64,000 bases of DNA from Geosiphon pyriformis uo1 (GCA_016748015.1 JAAOMT010000295.1:1-64000), one strand, 5' to 3'. Shown: positions 50,470 through 61,640, counted from the first letter of the stretch. The notes: a model not told the origin generated them from the letters alone. Numbers and translations are program-made.

Positions 50470-51794
50470 TTACATATAATCCCTATTTATAGTCGGCTCA
50501 TTCAATGCGCTATACGTTTCTAAATCAAAGTCTTCTAAATATTCTTGACTCAAGAGCTGAGAAAGCCAGTTAATTTTTCTTTTCAAATTTTTGATTTCAT
50601 CTGCATCAACTGCAAACATCGAATTATTGTTTAACTTTGATAACGGAGAATGAGATGGCAATCGATTAATTTGGAAATATGGAATATCAACGAATGTATC
50701 ATTTTGTAGGGACGAAGTCGAAGAAGGATTATGTGAAATGTCTCCATATTTAGACTCTAGTTTCATGCGGTTTTTCTTAGCGTCAGGGGAGCTTTTGAGA
50801 AGATATTTTTGGATAATGCCCCAAGACTTAAATTTCCCAGGACCAAAAAGAACTAACCATATTGTAGAAGTAAAGGTTAAAAAGCCACCGAAGGACGATA
50901 TGAAGTTAATCAAACTATAAGCTTTATTTTCCGTATATTTGGTGACCTTCGAAGATAATATTAAAATTTTAATTTGCGTTCTTGACAATGTTATGACCTT
51001 AGTTTAAATAATTTTGGTAGACTTACCAAAAAATCAGTTGGATAAAACCAAATTTCTAATATCAATGCATCATCTGTTAAATATTCTTTTATCTTTTCGC
51101 TCTCTGTATACCAATGACTATATCCTTCAACATCAACCCTCTCAATCACTTTGAACGTGTACTCATTCAAACTGCCGCCTTTCAAATCATATATGTTCTC
51201 CTCTTGATCATTATCAAGCCCTACATATGTAACAAATAAGAAACCAATTTTTGAATTTTTTGAATTAAAAATTTGACTGTTAAGGGTTTGTCGAGCAATC
51301 AACTGAGTTAGATTACGCCAAAATTTGATCCTAATAGATTCGATTCCTACTGGGTAATAAATTAATCTCGGGTCATTTAAGCGCTCGAATCTTAAACAAT
51401 TAGAGTTGTCAAGTCCTTCTAAAGGCTCCAATTTAACTCGCGTCGAATTCGATGATGTCCCATTAATAAAAATATAATCAGTATTTATATTATTATTATT
51501 ATTATTATTATTATCTACCATTTGATATTCTATTGTAATTTTCTCCACGTAATTAGTTACATTTTGTTTTATGCAAATAGATGCGTCTGGGACTGGAATA
51601 CCACTTTTAGATTTATCGTTAAGCAGAGAAATAGATATTAATGGTTCCTGGTTTTTAAATAGTTTTTTAAAGTTTGGAATTGATGCGACGATAATAAGTC
51701 CATAAAGAGTAATATAGACTAAAAGACGAAGCCTCATTTCTCGGTTTCGCTTTAAAAAGTTGAAACTTATTTTTTTAAACCATTTTGAAATCAT
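50470..51794 (-). CDS. Two-TM membrane protein, type A (DEG/ENaC/PAC-like topology), 414 aa, intact
   Basis: Exons 51027-51794 and 50470-50946, phase-0 intron 50947-51026. TM1 LLVYITLYGLIIVASIP; PLISIS...IPVPDASIC; YTENKAYSLINFISSFGG then TM2; FGPGKFKSWGIIQ. Confidence 0.85.
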
Positions 51795-52115
51795 GGTTTC
51801 TTTAGAATGATTTGGAGGAAGTATAGAGTGTTTTCGTATTAATAAAAAAGAGTAAGTATAAATGGAGAAAAGCTACAGTGTATATTGTGATATATAATGA
51901 TATCAAAAAAAAAAAATTCTCATTATATTAGGGCTGATAGGAAAAACTAGGGAAAACTATTAAAAGATAAAGTTGTTAAAGATCTTTTTGTTAAATGAAA
52001 TATACAGAAAATTTAAAAAATTGAATTTTCTATAAACATGTTTTTCTTGGGATAAATTAATCACGACAAGAATTAAATTTTGATTTGTTAGAGACAGGCA
52101 CAAATAAATACATTA

Positions 52116-52116
<1 letters not shown>

Positions 52117-52161
<45 letters not shown>
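52117..52161. repeat. (TTA)n microsatellite in the A/B divergent intergenic region
   Basis: Visible directly. Confidence 0.9.
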
Positions 52162-52163
<2 letters not shown>

Positions 52164-52660
52164 ATCTTCAGGAAAAAAATTCACCATGATAAATGGCCTA
52201 ATATCAATGACGAAAAACAGTTTATCTTGAGTAACCAAACAAATAAAATCAAAAAAAAACTATTTTTATTATCATAAATATTTTTACTTTCATTATAGTA
52301 TTAAACTTTTGAGCATTTATCCGATATAATCTTTGAATATCCAAAATTGTCATATTTGTCTTGGAAATCTCATGAAAACAACCTTTTCTTAATCGGATGA
52401 TTGATCCTCAAATTGTTTACTTGATGTTTCTACAAATCGCCTTTACAGAGAATTTCCAAAGGATTTTTATCTGACACCACCAAATTGAACAAGAAAAAAT
52501 TCTTATTAAACTCTCCATTTACTAAAATCCTTGAAGATTACAAGCAAATGTAACTTTAATCTCATATATTTTTGTAACTAAAACCCATTCAATTGAATTG
52601 CGTCTGCTTGATTTTTTCTCGGCTATTTTTTCCTTTACTCTGTACCAAATCCAATTTAAA

Positions 52661-54036
52661 ATGAAGGGTTGTCATTCGCTCCCAAAGTTAACCACCGAAC
52701 TAATAATTCGCTTCATATTGGGCATCAGTATTTTATTAATAATTGTCTTCATGACAATTCCCAACTTTTTCAAACTTTTGGTTCATCAAGACACATTAGT
52801 TTCAATCTCTATAAACAAGGATAAATCAGAAACTGGTATACCAGCACCAAATGCCCTACTCTGTCCAAATGAGACAATATTCCCTTATTTGAAGGGTGTA
52901 GAATTTAATACATTTGAATCGCAAGCAGAAAATTCAATCCTTCTTTCCTCTGTTTATATTGATTTACAGAATTATACATCATCCCCAGATGAAATACTGA
53001 CTTTAAGAGAAATAAATGAAAAGTCTAAATGTTTAGCTTTTGTTCCTGATGGTCGTTTGATATATACCTTAAAAGAACTTTCATTTGTTGAGCTCAATGT
53101 CTATCAAAATGAGCAAGTGAATAAAAACACCTTTGGGGAAAATGCAGAGTTTGGAACTATATGGGTGACCTATGATCCAGTCAATAACACCTATCAAGAG
53201 AGAGATTCAGTTAAAATTAAACTACACTATAAAACCAATATCGATTTAAATCCAACAGAAAGAATAGATGTGCATAAAAAAAGTCATTGGTATAAAAGCG
53301 TTCCAGAGCGTTTAGAAGAATTCCCGCTTCCCCAATCTTCTATTTCAGTTAAAATTCGGTTTTATCCGATTAATTTTCTGGTAAGTTTTGAAATAAAGAT
53401 TGATTATTTCAAAATTCAGGTTTTTATAACTATCTAATCTTTTAATGACTTCATTCGTGAAATTAGGTAACGCAATACACAGAAAAAAACGAGGTTACCT
53501 GGATTGATCTTTTTACTGGTATTGGTGGTTTATTTACATATGCCTCAGGATTGTGGAAATTATTATTTGGTCGTGGACGCTTTAAATCATGGGGTATTAT
53601 TCAACAATACATTCTCAAAACTGCACCAAACGCTAATAAACGAAGACGAGAAAAAATCCAAGATTCACCAATATTACCAATACAAACTTTTTCAAAGAAT
53701 CTCTATTCATCAAGCGAACAATCTCAGAGTGATACATTAAATAGCACCCCAACACTATTATATGTCTATAATTCTGGTAAACATTTTCGATGCAACTTCG
53801 ATAATACTAGCGAGAAATCCAGCATTAGTGGTGAAAGTTCATACTCAGAGAAAAGTATCCATTCTTGCAATCGCATACCAAAAATAGCTTTAGATTTTGG
53901 AAATACCGATGAACGAACGGTGGCAGATAATTTAAAGGTATTGCAAAGGGAAGTGAAATTAATTGAAAAACTGTTAAATAAAGAGTATTTAGAAGGATTT
54001 GATTTAGAAACTTTTGATAAGATAAATCGAATTTAA
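52661..54036 (+). CDS. Two-TM membrane protein, type B (paralog of A), 429 aa, intact
   Basis: Exons 52661-53380 and 53467-54036, phase-0 intron 53381-53466 at the same position as in A. TM1 FILGISILLIIVFMTIP; TLVSIS...IPAPNALLC; YTEKNEVTWIDLFTGIGG then TM2. Confidence 0.85.
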
Positions 54037-55143
54037 TCTTAGTTTTTAAAACCCATACCTTATTAAAAAACTCAGACACAATTATTCCATAATAATTTTA
54101 ATTTTTAAATCACAGGAATTCAAAAATAACGTTTTGATAACGTTTTTATTTCCAGAAATTTGTCCTTTATATTTTAATTCATTAAATGAACAATTTTTGA
54201 AAAGAGAAATTTTTATAGGTTTACCAAATTCAACTCATTAACTTAAACAAATTTGCTAATAAACAGTTATAATTTTGTTATTGAAATGAGAAATAAAATA
54301 TATGTAAAAGAATTTTTTTTTACGTACACATTTTTATGGATGAAATTTAAGGATCCGAGTTTTTTTCATGTTGAAGAAAAACTTTAATTCTATTTCTTGG
54401 TAAAAATTACATAATCAATTAGTAAGATTTTCAATTGTTATAAAAATTTTTTTTTAATAGGACGTTTACCTTTTTTTTTCATTCTATTTATACTGTAAAA
54501 TTCTAATAACATAATAAAAATTTTAATTTGAATTCCACTTTCCTATTCTATCAATGGAGAAAGAAATTGATACTCGAAAATTTTAATTCAGTTTAAATTA
54601 TTTCTTATATGTTAAAATCCCAGTTTCATACTTGTAAATTAAATAATTCGTTAAAAATCGAACTTTAGAATTTTTCTCTTGATATTATCATTATTTTTTT
54701 TTCCTTTATATAATCTAGAAAATAGGAAAATATATTTAATTTAAGCATTAGCAATTCAATTATTATTAAAAAAAATCACTTTATAAATAATAATTTGACA
54801 ATTACTATTGAATACGATCAATTGCAAAAGAAATAAAAGAGTGAAATTTTGGAATGTAACAAATAAATTTTATCATTTTTTGTGTACTCGAATTAGTTTT
54901 AATACAAGGATTTTTCTTCTAATTTTAATTCGTCCACTAATTATAAAAGTAATATCACGTAAAAATTTTACCCACGTTAAATTTTTTTGATAATGAAAGC
55001 AAAAATTTAAACAAAACATGAAGCGAATAAATAAATAAATATTTTTCACATAGCTATTTTTTTTATCTTACATTAATTCATTCAAGAGTTACAAAAATCA
55101 AATTCAGATAAAAATATTATGCAAGGCCTGTTAAATCTTGACA

Positions 55144-56461
55144 TCAAACCACTACCCAATCATCATCCTCGTTTTCAGCTTGAGCAACATTCGCAGCGTA
55201 TAGATTAAGATCATACGCTTGATCCTTTAACAAACCTTTGATCATCGTAAAGTCTTTGTCTAAAATTTGGCGAGCAAATTCAACCTCAATTTCATCCCCG
55301 ATTTCCTCGATAACACTTCGGCCAGATCTCAAAGCATCTTCCATTGCATTGGCAATTTTACAGAAATTGGTTCCAAAATAGCTCCAGATATCGCGAAAAG
55401 ATCTCATAGTATCCGCTAATTCTTTGGTATCTTCCCCGATAGACATTATTTCGTATCGTGTTAGTTCGATAATACCGAGCTTTCTTTTAAGTTCCTCCCT
55501 TTTTTGACAAAGCATTTTTGTTTTCTTCCAACCATCTAAAAAATTTTCAAATCACAAGTTCTAGAAAATTAGAAAAAATCCAAAGAGAAATCCACAGAAT
55601 AAGTTTAAATTACCATTATATTTCTCTAAATCATCGTTAATTGTTTCCGAGACCTCGTCAAAAACTTCTGCCACTTTTGTTATTGATTTTCTTACTCTCA
55701 TTGTACTCTCACAAGAACCGACAAAAATTTGTGCCATTATATTCACGAAGGCGAATCCAAGTTGACCAACTGATGCTGACCATTTCATTAAACATTTATT
55801 CATATTTGCTTTTACTTTAATAAGTTCGTTTTGGACTTGATCAATTTCTTTTGAGAGCGTGGTTTTATCTTCAAGACCATAATTCACCTCATATTGAGTG
55901 AGAAACAGGTCAGCCTTGTCACCGAGAAGCTCAAATTCACTTTGAATTTTTGATGTTTCGAAATTTTTCGTTTTAATTGTCTAGGTGGGAGTGAGAAAGT
56001 GAAAAAAAATTACGAATTTACGCGAATCCTTTGGATACCCTAATTTGAAAAAATACCGGTATAGTATCTCTTAAAAATTTTAACTTTCTTTGAATTGAGA
56101 AACCATCTGCTTGGATCGTCGGCAAAATGACATCGCTAAACCGAGTTAAAAAGGCGCTTAATATCCCAGCTTGATCTTTCGAGTCACGTAAAAGATTTCG
56201 CCAATTTTGTTGAAGAGTTGGCCAATCTGTACTGTGATCGAGTTTCTTTACTCCAGGTTGGAGGAAAATTTTTTCTAGATTGAAGCGCACACAGTCAAAA
56301 CTTTGATCTATCTTTTGTGCTTTTAACGTGATTTCGTTAATTTTAGGGTTCAAATTTCTATCGGCTTCATAAGTTTCTACGATTTTCTGTTCGAAATCTT
56401 TTTTCTGGTTATTGGAGGGATCAAATTTTACAAGTTGAGATTCATTGAACGAGTTATTCAT
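55144..56461 (-). CDS. All-alpha cytosolic protein, possibly ClyA/Hbl/XaxA-like pore-forming toxin fold; 3 exons, 387 aa; C-terminal LIR/AIM
   Basis: Exons 56057-56461, 55614-55980 and 55144-55535 splice in frame (1164 nt). Long amphipathic helices flank the hydrophobic segment WSASVGQLGFAFVNIMAQIFVG; ends EDDDWVVV. Gene model solid, fold tentative. Confidence 0.7.
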
Positions 56462-58180
56462 GACTAGCTTAAATTTAAGGATTAATTTGAACACGGATAA
56501 TATGCTTCAGAGTAGATAGTTGAAAATTTAAAGCTTAGCAAAACAACAATAGCTTTTATTGAAAATCATTCACAATAATTCAAAGAAAATAAGAAAAACA
56601 AGAATTCAACCAGTTTGTGTTTACATTCTAATTCCGTCTAGAATTTTTAATTATAAGCCACTGTTTGGTTTTTAATATTGCCTAAATTCATTGTTTTTTA
56701 TTTGTAACAATTACTTGAGAAAATACTTGGGAATTTTGTTCGCATAACTAGCCAAACTAGGGAAACGATGTGTGTGTAAACCGGCTAGTGAGATCGATAT
56801 CATCTATGAAAATTATTATATACAATGATTTCCTAATTGATTTTTTGTGCATAAGAATCCCCTTGAATGCTATATCTCATAAATTAAGGTTATGCATAAG
56901 AGAAAAGCTGATTGTTGTAGAGATAAATGATTGAATTGAACCTTTATTTAGTAAACAAAAACTTTTGATTATGAAGCATTGTTGGTATCTAGTATTGTAA
57001 GCTTTTTTTAATATTATTTTTGGAGAAAAAAAAAACTTGTTTCACTTAACATTGAAGTCACGAGAATACTATCCTTTCACAACCAAAATTTATTAGAAAA
57101 ATTCAAGGTTTAAGCTTTTTTCGGCAAAAAGTTATGATAAAATTAAAAATATTCATATTATCAAATATAATTTATTTAAACCAAGTTTTCAGGATTTTAA
57201 GAAATAGGCAATAAATTTTTAAATTAAACCTTTTTATGTATACTATAAATAATCAAATATATCTGATATTCTAAAAAAAAAATTTTTATCTGATTCAAAA
57301 GCGAAAGCATTTTAATTTTTTGTTTATCTCCTGATTTGGTAAATCCAAAAAACCAAAAGTGTGAGAAAAAAAGTTGCCTAATCTTTCAAAATAATATTAA
57401 AAGATTGGTGGATTTAATAATTCCCTAAAAGTTGGCAATTCCTCGATTAGAAATTATGAGAAAAATGACTTAGACTGAAAGATTATGTAATAATCTGCAC
57501 CATAACTTCTGATGAAAATTAACAAATGATTTCTGCTCAATTAAAGGTTGCTGTTATTAGAAACATTTGATTTAAAATTGAATTTCAAAAGAGCTATTAA
57601 AACTTTTTTATAATTTTAAAGGAAATCCCAATAATCTCAAAAGGATTTCATATTAAAAATAATATTAACATAAAATAAATATTCCATGTACATTGTGACA
57701 ATCAAAAATTACTTTCTTATTTTCGAATTTTAGATTTAGAAAAAAATTCTAAAGTAAAATCATTTCTTGTTGAGTTTTTTTCAACAATATGAAATAATGA
57801 TTTATATAAAGTATAAAAATAAATGTTTTTCTAAACATTATAAGATTTGCTGGTTGAGAAATTATTAGATTTTTGAGCATGATACTAAATAATTTTTTCT
57901 GACTTTGGTAAATTTTTAACTTTTTCGAAAGAATTACCCTAAATATTGCATTCATTATATCTGAAACCTTAAAATGCTTATTCAAACTTAATTCTATTTA
58001 AATCAAACCTCAATATATATGAAAATATTATGTTTTTACTCTTCTGTTCTTGAATTCTTTTGACTTCAAAATTGTGATTTTAAAAATTGAATTATTTAAT
58101 TTGGATATTCATAGAAATTCCGACTCAAATAAATTTTTAACTTATTATTAATAAAGTAGCTATTAAAACCTAACATAAAG

Positions 58181-59585
58181 TCATTTTTTACCATTAGAAG
58201 TCTGACCCGTCTTATCAAAAGTTCCTAAATCAAATCCTTTTAAATACTCTTGATCTAATATTTTTTCAATTAAGTTCACTTTCCTTTGCAATACCTTCAA
58301 ATCATCTGTAAACATTTTTTGATGGCTATTTTCACAATCTAAAGCTATTTTTGATAAGCGATTGCAGGACTGGATACTTTTCTCTAAGTATGAACTTTCA
58401 CCAATAATGCTGGATTTCTCGCTAGTACTATCAAAGTTGCATCGAAAAGTTTCCCCAAAATTAGGTGTAGATAAAAAGGTTGAGGTACTATTTAATGTAT
58501 CACTCTGAGATTGTCGCTTAAAGAATAGAGATTCATTGAAAAAGTTTGTATTGATAATATTGGTGAATCTTGGATTTTTTCTCGTCTTCGTTTATTTGCG
58601 TTTGGTGCAGTTTTGAGAATGTATTGTTGCATAATACCCCATGATTTAAAACTTCCAGGACCGAATAATAATATCCACAATCCTGAGGCATATGTAAATA
58701 AACCACCAATACCAGTAAAAAGATCAATCCAGGTAAACTCGTTTTTTTCCATGTATTGCGTTACCTAATTTCACGAATGAAGTCATTAAAAAATTAGATG
58801 GCTATAAAAATCTGAATTTTGAAATGATCAATCTTAATTTCAAAACCTACCAAAGAATTAATCGGATAAATCCAAACCTCAATCAAAGTGAAAGGTTCTT
58901 TTATGTTTGGATCTTCTTTAAAATTGTCCGGGAAATTTTTGTACCAATGGCTATTTCCCCTCACATTTATTATTTCAGTTGGATCTAAGGTGATGGCAGT
59001 AAGATGGTTTGGCCTGATTTTAACTGATTCTCGCTCTTGATAAGTGCCATTAACTGAATCATATGTAACCCATACAAAGCCAAACTGTTCTTTCTGCCAC
59101 ATTTGCTGAAAATCATCTATTTTACTATTATACTCATTTTGATAAAATACTATTCTAACATTCTCCACTTTTTGATAATATTTCAGAGAACCATCAGGTC
59201 TAAAAGCTAAACATTTAAACTTTGGACCGATTTCTCGTAAAATCAATCTTGGTTCATTTGATGATGATCTATTATTATTTTCCAGATCAAAAAAACCAAA
59301 AATAATTTCTTCGCTTTTATCCAAAACAGTTATATTATTAAAAACGGTTATATTTTTTAAATAAGGGAATATTTTTATATTTAGACAGAGCAAGGCGTTT
59401 GGTACTGGTATACCAGTTTCCGATTTATTCTTGTTTATAGAGATTGAAACTAAGGGGTCTTGATATATGAAAACTTTGGAAAAGTTAGGAATTGTCATGG
59501 CGACGATTATTGAGAAAATACTAAGGCTAAATATGAACCGAATTTTCAGCTCAGTATTGAACTTTGGGAATGAATGACGAAACAT
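58181..59585 (-). pseudogene. Type B' two-TM protein copy with a 1-nt deletion in the cytosolic tail (truncated allele or pseudogene)
   Basis: Exon 1 58851-59585, intron 58765-58850. agcgacaatct vs agcgaacaatct in B near 58514 gives an early stop at 58492; homology continues to EYLKGFDLGTFDK and TGA at 58181. Confidence 0.8.
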
Positions 59586-60335
59586 TATTTTAAGTTTAAA
59601 TGGTGAAAGTAAAAAAGAAAATTGAGCGGATCCAATTTGATTGAGTTAGTTTTATATTCAATAGATTAAATTTATGCCTGCTTTTAGTCTTTCGAAGTTT
59701 TTTTTACTAAAAAAAAGGTTAGTGAAAATATTTCTTAATATGTTATTAAATAAGGATATTATGATAATTTTTTATATAAATTTTAAAAATAAATAAATAA
59801 ATTTTCGAGGAACAATCATTTCCACCAATGTTTTCCATTCGGTGCAACAATTGAATCTGTTATGGAAATGTTTGCCTATAAAAAATTAATATTTTTTCAA
59901 TGATAGGTAGTTTTGGATAATTAATACCAATTGTCCGTTAAAATTTTTTTCATTTTTAAAAGTTTAATACTATCTCAAAATAAAAAAAATTTTAATTATT
60001 AATTTAATCTTATCCTTGTTTTCTCAAAATCTGAAATAAATTTTTATTATTCTCAATTAGTTCATAGTAAAGTCATTGGCAAGTTTAAAACTTTAAAAAA
60101 AAACAAAGAATTCATTGGTACCTCTATTTTGGTGAAAATTTTATTCAACATTTTTACTCCTCGGTTCAAGTTTTTTCCTATCTACAAAATAAAAAAATTG
60201 AATTTCATGATATCTGCGATTACATCAATTTTAAGAAAGTTTTTATATATATAAATATGTCTTTTTTATCATTTTCAACTTTATATTCAGTGCTAAAATA
60301 TATTATATTTATCTTTGAAAAACGCTAGAAAAACT

Positions 60336-61640
60336 ATGATTTCAAAGCTTTTTAGAAAAACAGGTTCCTTTAACTTCTTAAAACGAAATCCAGAACTACG
60401 GATTCGTCTTTTAATTTGGATCACTCTTTGTGCAATCATTATTGTCGTCTCAACTCCAAACTTTATAAAACTATTTAAATACCAAAAACCATCAATATCT
60501 TTACCCGTACTTAGTGATAGATCTATCATTGGTGTTCCAATTCCAGATGTATGCATTTGCGTATTTGAAACGGCCATAGAAAAAGTGACAATAGATTATC
60601 AAATGGCGGATAATAATATAGCCTCAGATTATATTTTTATGAATGGGACAGCATCAAATTCTACAAGAGTTAAATTCAACTTTCGTGAAGAATATCCAAT
60701 CCCATGTTTATTATTTCAGCGATCAAATGACCCGAGGCTGATTTATAAACCATTAGGAATAAAATCGATTAGAATCAGATTTTGGCGTAATCTAATTCGA
60801 CAAACTCCTTTGAAAGCTCGAATAATTGGTTTCTTTTATACTACATATGTAGAGATTGACATTAATCCAGGTTTTAAAACATTCGAAATAATGGACGGTG
60901 GTCTGTATAAGTTCACATTCAATGCGATTGAGAAGATTGATGTAGAAGGAAATAGTCACTGGTACCAAAATTTTGAGAATAAAACGCCTCAGCTTAGTCC
61001 AGGAAATAATACATTACTATGTGAGATTCGTTATTCTCTAATCAATTTTTTGGTATGTTTCTATGATAGATCTTTATCCACGCCCAATTAATGATCAAAT
61101 AAAGCATTCATATTATCTTCAAAGGTCCCAAGATATACGGAAAAGAAAGCTTATAATTTAATTGACTTTATTTCGTCCCTTGGTAGTTTGTTAACCTTTA
61201 CTTCTACAATATGATTGGTTCTTTTTGGTCCTGGGAAATTTAAGTCTTGGGGCATTATCCAAAAATATCTTCTCGAAAGCTCCCCTGATGCTAAGAAAAA
61301 TCGCAAGAAAACAGAGTCTAAATATGGAGACATTTCACATAATCTTTCTTCGACTTCGGCCCTACAAAATGATACATTCGTTGATATTCCATATTTCCAA
61401 GTTAATCGATTGCCATCTCATTCTCCATTATCAGAGTTAAACAATAATTCGATGTTGGGGGTTGATATAATGAGTCATTCAAATGAGAGATGGAAAATGA
61501 CTCCGTCGTTTGCAGCTCAAATGGATGAGATTGAGGTTTTGAAAAGAAAAGTTAAATTACTTTCTCAGCTTTTGAGTAAAAAATATTTGCAAGGTTTCAA
61601 TTCAGAAACTTATAGCGCATTGAATGAGCCGACCAAATAA
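60336..61640 (+). pseudogene. Type A' two-TM protein copy with TGG>TGA nonsense codon in TM2 (61212-61214)
   Basis: Exon 1 60336-61052, intron 61053-61124. Exon 2 reads YTEKKAYNLIDFISSLGSLLTFTSTI*LVLFGPGKF, where A has TIWLVLFG. Confidence 0.82.

Follow-up and report, generated by a model that had tools for sequence, protein, structure and literature searches.

A mirror-image duplication of paired genes in Geosiphon pyriformis and the fungal family with a predicted channel-like fold to which they belong

When a gene pair stands in mirror image on either side of a third gene, is the arrangement a module whose parts work together, or a by-product of the way in which the genome copies its DNA? 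This question is posed by positions 50470-61640 of a 64,000-nt stretch of DNA from Geosiphon pyriformis uo1 (hereafter the window: the first 64 kb of contig C664, JAAOMT010000295.1, in the 128-Mb assembly GCA_016748015.1; DNA of 20-34% GC), where a divergently transcribed pair of genes, A and B, and its inverted counterpart, B' and A', enclose a single central gene. Head-to-head paralog pairs, variable sensing domains and nearby pore formers are features of paired immune receptors and of fungal allorecognition loci, and an initial annotation of this DNA proposed that A and B are co-expressed subunits of a heteromeric receptor-channel, possibly within a module for non-self sensing or regulated cell death that includes a pore-forming-toxin-like central protein. 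Here, we argue for a plainer origin. The locus is probably an inverted duplication whose left pair remains intact and transcribed and whose right pair is decaying, with a tract around the second transmembrane helix (TM2) converted between the arms, a passenger as its central gene, and paired genes drawn from a family with a predicted channel fold. The most notable result is that fungal gene family itself, with its predicted DEG/ENaC-PAC fold; taken as a structure, the palindrome is an inverted duplication of an ordinary, if instructive, kind.

Gene models were derived from a six-frame reading with peptide anchoring, the spliced products of A, A' and B being taken as the database proteins P0001, P0003 and P0004, and they confirm the gene order given in the initial annotation: A (minus strand), B (plus), the central gene (minus), B' (minus) and A' (plus). 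Gene A (G9A89_013810; 50470..51794) comprises exon 1 at 51794..51027, which encodes the first transmembrane helix (TM1) and the ectodomain, an intron at 51026..50947, and exon 2 at 50946..50470, which encodes TM2, a post-TM2 motif and a tail with a C-terminal helix. Gene B (52661..54036; 429 aa) is built in the same way, with exon 1 at 52661..53380, an intron at 53381..53466 and exon 2 at 53467..54036. Both are intact. On the right, B' (58181..59585) has its exon 1 at 59585..58851, an intron at 58850..58765 and exon 2 from 58764, and A' (60336..61640) has exon 1 at 60336..61052, an intron at 61053..61124 and exon 2 at 61125..61640; both of these genes are broken. All four introns start with GT and end with AG. 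The symmetry is carried by inverted repeats between A and A' (50605-50974 and 61097-61466; 370 nt, 90% identity) and between B and B' (53334-53717 and 58514-58897, 384 nt, 91%; 53718-54022 and 58210-58514, 305 nt, 85%), with additional arms of 72-84% identity, and these A/A' and B/B' arms are the sole repeats of at least 120 nt in the entire window. Such a palindrome could arise in silico, as a fold-back chimera or from collapsed haplotypes, and all of the data do come from one sample. However, the divergence between the arms, 5-50% according to segment, is unlike that of a chimeric fold-back, and an independent assembly of reads (run X1, from the same single sample as the genome) yielded a DNA contig of 4938 nt (record 6) that bridges the spacer and both inner arm ends. 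Because this contig leads from the B 3' end across the central gene and into the 3' end of B', which lies on the other strand, the layout is not an artefact of scaffolding, and we reject an assembly artefact as scarcely credible.

What, then, do the paired genes encode? A and B align over their full length, with ~30% identity across exon 1 and the ectodomain and much higher identity around TM2, and each contains one intron, at the identical codon before V-T-x-Y-T-E. Their earlier description as distant paralogs with a common intron position is therefore upheld. The same position is found in genes of Ambispora gerdemannii and Rhizophagus irregularis, so that on sequence grounds it is ancestral to the family, and the notion that it marks a special tie between A and B is rejected on that account. 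Exon 1 of A matched G9A89_013810 (100% identity), G9A89_013814 and G9A89_008333 in the database, all from Geosiphon pyriformis, and a HMMER scan with an A/B profile, run in full over 1.84 billion representatives, returned 69 proteins. Every member looked up is fungal and annotated as "hypothetical," and none carries a Pfam domain in Pfam scans. The genera represented are Ambispora, Diversispora, Rhizophagus, Acaulospora, Funneliformis, Gigaspora and Entrophospora, together with Mortierella, Dissophora, Phycomyces, Thamnocephalis and Basidiobolus. Judged by sequence, A and B thus belong to an unnamed and unannotated family of early-diverging fungi.

Proteins of this family begin with a short cytosolic segment and TM1; a beta-rich ectodomain of ~220 residues, which bears two conserved cysteines and N-glycosylation sequons, leads to TM2, and the tail closes with a conserved helix. 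In the family alignment, a conserved TM1 is followed by I-P-V-P-x-x-x-x-C and a second conserved Cys; S-P-D-x-x-x-V-x-x-Y-x-E precedes TM2, which itself carries a near-invariant G-G; L-F-G-x-G-K-[YF]-K-S-W-G follows directly; and the C-terminal helix of most members reads L-E-Q-T-L-S-R-x-Y-L-x-G-F. The ectodomains of A and B contain 3-4 N-glycosylation sequons and both of their transmembrane helices are flanked by basic residues on the cytosolic side, which fits a topology with both termini inside the cell (N-in/C-in). On another Geosiphon contig, a VPS9-domain gene model (P0052; G9A89_013254, 1358 aa) matches the TM2/post-TM2 block of the family at residues 1190-1242, and may be either a fused gene model or a further diverged family member.

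An AlphaFold2 model of A, computed from P0001 with the family alignment (predicted local distance difference test, pLDDT, 73), comprises a helix at residues 2-28, a beta domain at 33-244, a helix at 249-271, two short helices, a disordered stretch and a last helix. It has the two transmembrane helices around a beta-rich ectodomain that typify the DEG/ENaC palm core with its N-in/C-in topology, and likewise the fold of a PAC subunit, both transmembrane helices included. When the model was searched against PDB with Foldseek, ranks 1-20 were all PAC/ASOR/TMEM206 (E 7.8e-9 to 2.1e-6, best prob 1.0), followed by BRTNaC1, PDPNaC1, Erv41p and many ASICs. Alignment with VIA-align to FaNaC, PDPNaC1, ASIC1a/2a, ENaC, BRTNaC1 and PAC gave Z scores of 10.3-12.8 over 210-243 residues (model positions 1-290); those for PAC/TMEM206 were 10.4-11.8, with 215-243 residues aligned and both transmembrane helices included, and those for FaNaC, PDPNaC1 and ASIC1a were 12-12.8 over 211-230 residues. 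A shape search of the Atlas returned several large Mucoromycota clusters of "hypothetical" proteins, chordate TMEM206 and the ERV family. One of these Mucoromycota clusters (row 4; 193 members of ~1000 aa) combines Kelch/galactose-oxidase-type beta-propellers with a part like residues 1-288 of the model, which hints that the fold may there be fused to other extracellular domains.

Traces of the same relationship are present at the level of sequence. Pfam ASC (PF00858) matches at TM2 were found in four family members (exon 2 of A, 13.1 bits; P0007, P0008 and P0015, 17.4-18.8 bits; model positions 395-440), at scores below the gathering score of 23.6 bits. Among all PDB sequences, the family profile matched four at E<=10, all of them DEG/ENaC proteins (FaNaC, 0.052; BRTNaC1, 0.22-0.37), and the alignments cover the homologous beta12/pre-TM2/TM2 block. 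Within non-significant sub-alignments, moreover, I-P-V-P-x-x-x-x-C falls opposite Y-P-S-V-T-I-C in FaNaC and I-P-E-I-T-V-C in BRTNaC1, at the [FY]-P-x-x-T-x-C motif. The resemblance to DEG/ENaC, ASIC and FaNaC proteins extends from topology and a palm-type beta core (VIA Z up to 12.8) to weak sequence matches, consistent in position, across the beta12/pre-TM2/TM2 block (Y-x-E ... D-[LF]-x-x-x-I-G-G) and, in the non-significant sub-alignments, at the post-TM1 P-x-x-x-x-C, whereas the fungal ectodomain is about half the size and is devoid of the large finger and thumb insertions. PAC/ASOR/TMEM206 resembles the family in having two transmembrane helices and a compact, beta-rich ectodomain of comparable size. 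No sequence match links the two, and a long cytosolic tail, the post-TM2 motif and the C-terminal helix set the fungal proteins apart.

Several observations weigh against reading A and B as channels of this kind. The G/S-x-S selectivity filter is absent from TM2 of the family, which has A-I-W or T-I-W where FaNaC has G-I-S in the HMMER alignment; the His-Gly motif that precedes TM1 has no counterpart in the short N-termini of A, B and their relatives, where no H-G occurs; Pfam scans of 30 family members and the exons of the window gave no TMEM206 (PF15122) match; the ASC scores stay under the gathering threshold throughout; global TM-scores are modest (0.3-0.5); the argument for channel function is one from fold; and the fold lists also include Erv41p, a non-channel, two-TM protein resembling a cargo receptor. 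The last of these suggests a different identity for the family, namely ERV41/46- or ERGIC-like proteins that have two transmembrane helices and a lumenal beta-sandwich and serve in trafficking or cargo binding. Their membrane topology is identical, the lumenal domain of Erv41p appears in the Foldseek list (E 7e-5) and an ERV cluster occupies row 5 of the Atlas search. PAC and DEG/ENaC structures nevertheless rank well above Erv41p, with matches that cover both transmembrane helices, the sequence traces point solely to DEG/ENaC, and the Pfam scans gave no ERGIC_N or COPIIcoated_ERV match; accordingly, we regard the trafficking alternative as unlikely. Since the Pfam threshold, the His-Gly motif and the G-x-S filter all fail, we do not file the family within DEG/ENaC or PAC. 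Instead, we conclude from the model that it would form a fungal branch of the DEG/ENaC-PAC structural superfamily, compact in the manner of PAC. Members of the DEG/ENaC superfamily form homo- or heterotrimers, and we infer from the predicted fold that the A and B proteins may be subunits of trimeric channels or of channel-like receptors. The earlier label "channel-like" is thus supported by a fold match that spans the transmembrane helices and the ectodomain, and by weak sequence traces at TM2. A survey that searched Fungi for DEG/ENaC found none, and PAC has been described as restricted to deuterostomes (10.1101/2022.06.28.497943); no description of fungal relatives of TMEM206 or ENaC was found in the searchable literature.

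How did two mirrored pairs of such genes come to lie side by side? A search of the whole Geosiphon assembly for further copies of A, B and the central gene revealed a third, intact head-to-head pair on contig C609 (403590-404936 on the minus strand and 405706-407122 on the plus strand; the copies A609 and B609), with 769 nt of spacer between its genes and kinase genes at either flank. Contig C778 carries one intact A-type gene by itself (A778), contig C624 an A-type pseudogene, and C482 and C609 fragments of the family. In a maximum-likelihood tree, the seven Geosiphon copies form one clade on a long stem (support of 99 in the Shimodaira-Hasegawa-like approximate likelihood-ratio test, SH-aLRT), so the split into A and B is specific to the Geosiphon lineage. 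Within it, the A genes and the B genes form separate clades (98 each) with congruent topologies, (A,(A',(A609,A778))) and (B,(B',B609)). Synonymous divergence (dS) in exon 1 is likewise matched, at 0.69 for A-A' and 0.67 for B-B', with values of 0.65 and 0.59 to the C609 copies, and the spacers of the three head-to-head pairs measure 866, 750 and 769 nt. Given the third intact pair, the congruent trees and the equal dS (~0.7), the pair was copied as a unit. The divergent pair arose in the Geosiphon lineage and was duplicated at least twice, first in mirror image at the present locus, producing an old inverted segmental duplication, and probably later from the right arm to C609.

The picture outside Geosiphon is different. 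R. irregularis, D. eburnea and Mortierella each have a single gene, and Ambispora gerdemannii has two tandem copies and one convergent copy at the end of a 13.7-kb contig (6968-8213, 10438-11145 and 13574-13672). Local amplification of the family is consequently not confined to Geosiphon, and no head-to-head pair was present in the loci compared from these four. The conservation of the A/B pair as a unit, which the initial annotation had proposed to check by synteny, is therefore borne out within Geosiphon by three pairs, congruent trees and equal dS; its wider form fails, in that no pair recurs in other species and the central gene is not linked to the pair on C609. The contig that carries the third pair ends 1.7 kb away from it (C609:403590-408788), so that any mirror-image partner would be out of view. 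Each dispersed copy of A or B, as well as a pseudogene of the central gene, adjoins genes or gene remnants from a single protein-kinase family whose N-terminal region is Cys-rich (C609:399993-401452 and 408297-408788; C482:4267-5774; C525:5666-7244; C778:141561-142191), and the dispersed A/B copies sit in kinase-rich, duplication-prone regions.

The two arms have since met with different fates, and the right pair is decaying. In A', an in-frame TGG>TGA change at 61212-61214 interrupts the middle of TM2, where the near-invariant G-G has also become G-S, and the database model of this gene (P0003) evades the stop only by splicing out TM2. In B', a deletion of 1 nt near 58514 (G-A-A-C to G-A-C, which is not a long homopolymer) shifts the frame and leads to a stop at 58492; the indel is present in the read-derived contig as well, and the database model (P0006) ends at 306 aa. 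The ratio of nonsynonymous to synonymous divergence (dN/dS) is 1.05 between A' and A609, as fits neutral drift on the A' branch, and lies at 0.4-0.66 between intact copies, with no sign of diversifying selection over the whole domain.

Moreover, the arms are mosaics. Over exon 1, A' is 78-94% identical at the nucleotide level to A609 and A778 in most windows and only 49-76% identical to A, and B' is closer to B609 than to B. Between the intron end and the post-TM2 motif, TM2 included, this pattern is reversed, with A-A' identity of 87-95% and B-B' identity of 94-95%. Informative sites mark the boundaries: in A, those upstream favor (A',A609) by 151:39, those at 50932-50633 favor (A,A') by 39:12, and those that follow return to (A',A609) by 23:9; in B, those upstream stand 141:37 against (B,B'), and those at 53422-53816 favor (B,B') by 65:16. 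The tract in A (50633..50932, minus strand) includes the last part of the intron, TM2, the motif behind it and the beginning of the tail, with its partner in A' within ~61097-61466, and the tract in B (53422..53816, plus strand) covers the same gene segment, with its partner in B' within ~58415-58810. Exon 2 of A' was judged by site patterns and identities, as the stop codon shifts the alignment and renders a codon-based dN/dS invalid. Because B-B' dS drops from 0.67 in exon 1 to 0.07 in the tract, and because the intron is included, the homogenization reflects gene conversion between the inverted arms rather than purifying selection; recombination between the arms has homogenized 300-400 nt around TM2 in both gene types. 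Two head-to-head pairs are indeed present, as initially described, but with A' and B' broken and the arms mosaic, they are not simple twins. The locus resembles other inverted segmental duplications with arm-to-arm conversion in its two inverted arms, its unique spacer and its local low-dS tract with reversed phylogeny, and differs from them in that its arms are old and mostly diverged (dS ~0.7), its conversion is limited to 300-400 nt per gene and one arm is pseudogenized.

If the pair was copied as a unit, was it also kept as one? Transcript evidence covers A, B and the central gene and comes from run X2, which is recorded as "DNA?" and whose contigs behave as transcripts, though their depth is no guide to the ranking of expression. 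In one of them, 53379 is joined to 53466, removing the GT..AG intron of B and confirming its model; a 1367-nt contig (record 10) covers the central gene with two GT..AG introns removed (55981-56056 and 55536-55613); and a 198-nt contig lies over the 3' end of A (50470-50635). These contigs show transcription of A, B and the central gene, and the anticipated co-transcription of A and B finds support in one spliced contig for B and one 3' contig for A. The 866-nt region between the two genes (51795..52660; 24% GC, with an (ATT)n run) is presumably a bidirectional promoter; it is only 51-56% identical to the spacers of the other two pairs, which are 70% identical to one another, and a bacterial promoter/terminator scan, a type not relevant to a eukaryote, showed no enrichment within it. 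Two (ATT)n/(AAT)n microsatellites occur here, one at 52103-52169 in the spacer and one at 51472-51514 in exon 1 of A, where it encodes nine consecutive Asn residues of the ectodomain that are missing from A', A609 and A778; read-derived contigs end at both.

These data bear on the proposal that head-to-head pairing has been kept by selection, with A and B co-assembling as a heteromeric channel and sharing the bidirectional promoter. The three pairs agree in orientation and are similar in spacer length, their trees and dS are concordant, both genes are transcribed, and ENaC, a DEG/ENaC relative whose trimer structures are among the fold matches, is a heterotrimer. Set against this are the intact A-type gene on C778, which stands alone with no B within ~5 kb on its upstream side; the single or tandem copies of other species, in which there is no A/B split; and the fact that neighbors co-duplicate without any functional tie. 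A two-chain complex prediction for A(1-305) and B(1-310) scored 0.01, a "no answer" that offers the proposal no verdict and counts neither way. On balance, selection for a heteromer is possible but doubtful. A stronger version, in which A and B form an obligate heterotrimer of the DEG/ENaC-PAC type, the unit is retained for that reason, and conversion keeps the pore and post-TM2 gate uniform as the ectodomains diversify for different cues, seems to us rather unlikely; were it so, the contact zone of Geosiphon with its Nostoc symbiont might be one setting for such sensing.

There remains the gene between the arms. It extends over 54971..56465 on the minus strand, the 3' end of its transcript contig lying at 54971, and its coding sequence of 387 codons (56461..55144) is divided into three exons (56461..56057, 55980..55614 and 55535..55144), which were taken from the spliced contig and differ from the raw open reading frames (ORFs). 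The product is acidic and predicted to be helical, and its most hydrophobic 19-residue window (KD19 1.53) is below the usual cut-off for a transmembrane helix. Searches were made exon by exon. No credible Pfam family emerged at E<=5, HlyE and Hbl profiles included; exons 1 and 2 gave only chance-level matches to PDB sequences; word-index searches with exons 1 and 3 found no relatives under a length filter that excludes full-length kin; and a metagenome locus scan with exon 3 found none either. Language-model features of exon 1 were nearest to bacterial HlyE clusters with a sub-threshold score of 0.85, which serves as a lead only, and those of exon 2 gave no usable match. An AlphaFold2 model of exon 2 by itself shows three helices at a pLDDT of 50, too poor to search with. 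The earlier term "pore-forming-toxin-like" comes down to that one sub-threshold lead, and neither Pfam nor PDB upholds it.

The pair on C609 has no relative of the central gene as a neighbor, and the sole other copy in the assembly is a pseudogene on C525 that neighbors kinase genes and no A or B gene. For these reasons, the link between the central gene and the pairs is best read as coincidental, an option that the initial annotation had itself allowed, and we infer that the gene is an unrelated, transcribed passenger in the 4.2-kb spacer rather than a partner. The contrary view is that the entire palindrome is one module in which A/B receptor-channels sense non-self and act with the central pore former in regulated cell death or allorecognition. 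It can appeal to the transcribed gene between the arms, to the HlyE lead from exon 1 and to ectodomains that evolve rapidly (dN/dS 0.4-1.05), and the locus does share with paired immune receptors and fungal allorecognition loci a divergent paralog pair, a fast-evolving extracellular domain and a lineage-specific expansion. Yet Pfam scans revealed no NLR, HET, HeLo or other death or recognition domain, the supposed pore former is unlinked at the other pair, Pfam, PDB and word searches lend the toxin fold no support, and the hydrophobicity of the central protein is too low for a typical transmembrane segment. One broken arm also argues against a working four-gene module, and no dN/dS clearly exceeds 1, the sole value near 1 involving a pseudogene. 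We therefore find the proposed cell-death module unsupported and consider it very unlikely.

The surroundings of the locus speak to the same issue. Approximately 5 kb past A', a second palindrome has arms of 563 nt at 98% identity, 6.3 kb apart (C664:66438-67000 and 73337-73899), each arm with a near-identical 165-aa ORF that points outward, and a 226-aa ORF with an HMG-box-like stretch between them. This unrelated palindrome has the same layout, which makes that layout look mutational, and with a second such cassette only 5 kb away, the palindromic arrangement is weaker as evidence of function. An inverted pair around a third gene is probably a recurrent product of how the Geosiphon genome duplicates DNA. 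Certain points do count against an inverted duplication with one decaying arm and a passenger: SH-aLRT support within the A and B clades is 89-92 and not decisive, the breaks in A' and B' are seen in the data of one sample only, and the central gene was compared by single exons, which leaves room for a functional link to the pairs. Considering all of the evidence, we still hold such a duplication to be the probable account of the locus.

DEG/ENaC and PAC channels are regarded as innovations of animals, a few protist outliers aside. With a family of this fold in Glomeromycotina, Mortierellomycotina, Mucoromycotina and Zoopagomycota, the range of the trimeric two-TM channel architecture would come to include fungi. 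The locus itself exemplifies how a gene pair can be copied as a unit, with one copy decaying and localized conversion taking place between inverted arms. For mycorrhizal and symbiotic fungi, the A/B family provides small and tractable candidate proteins for ion sensing.

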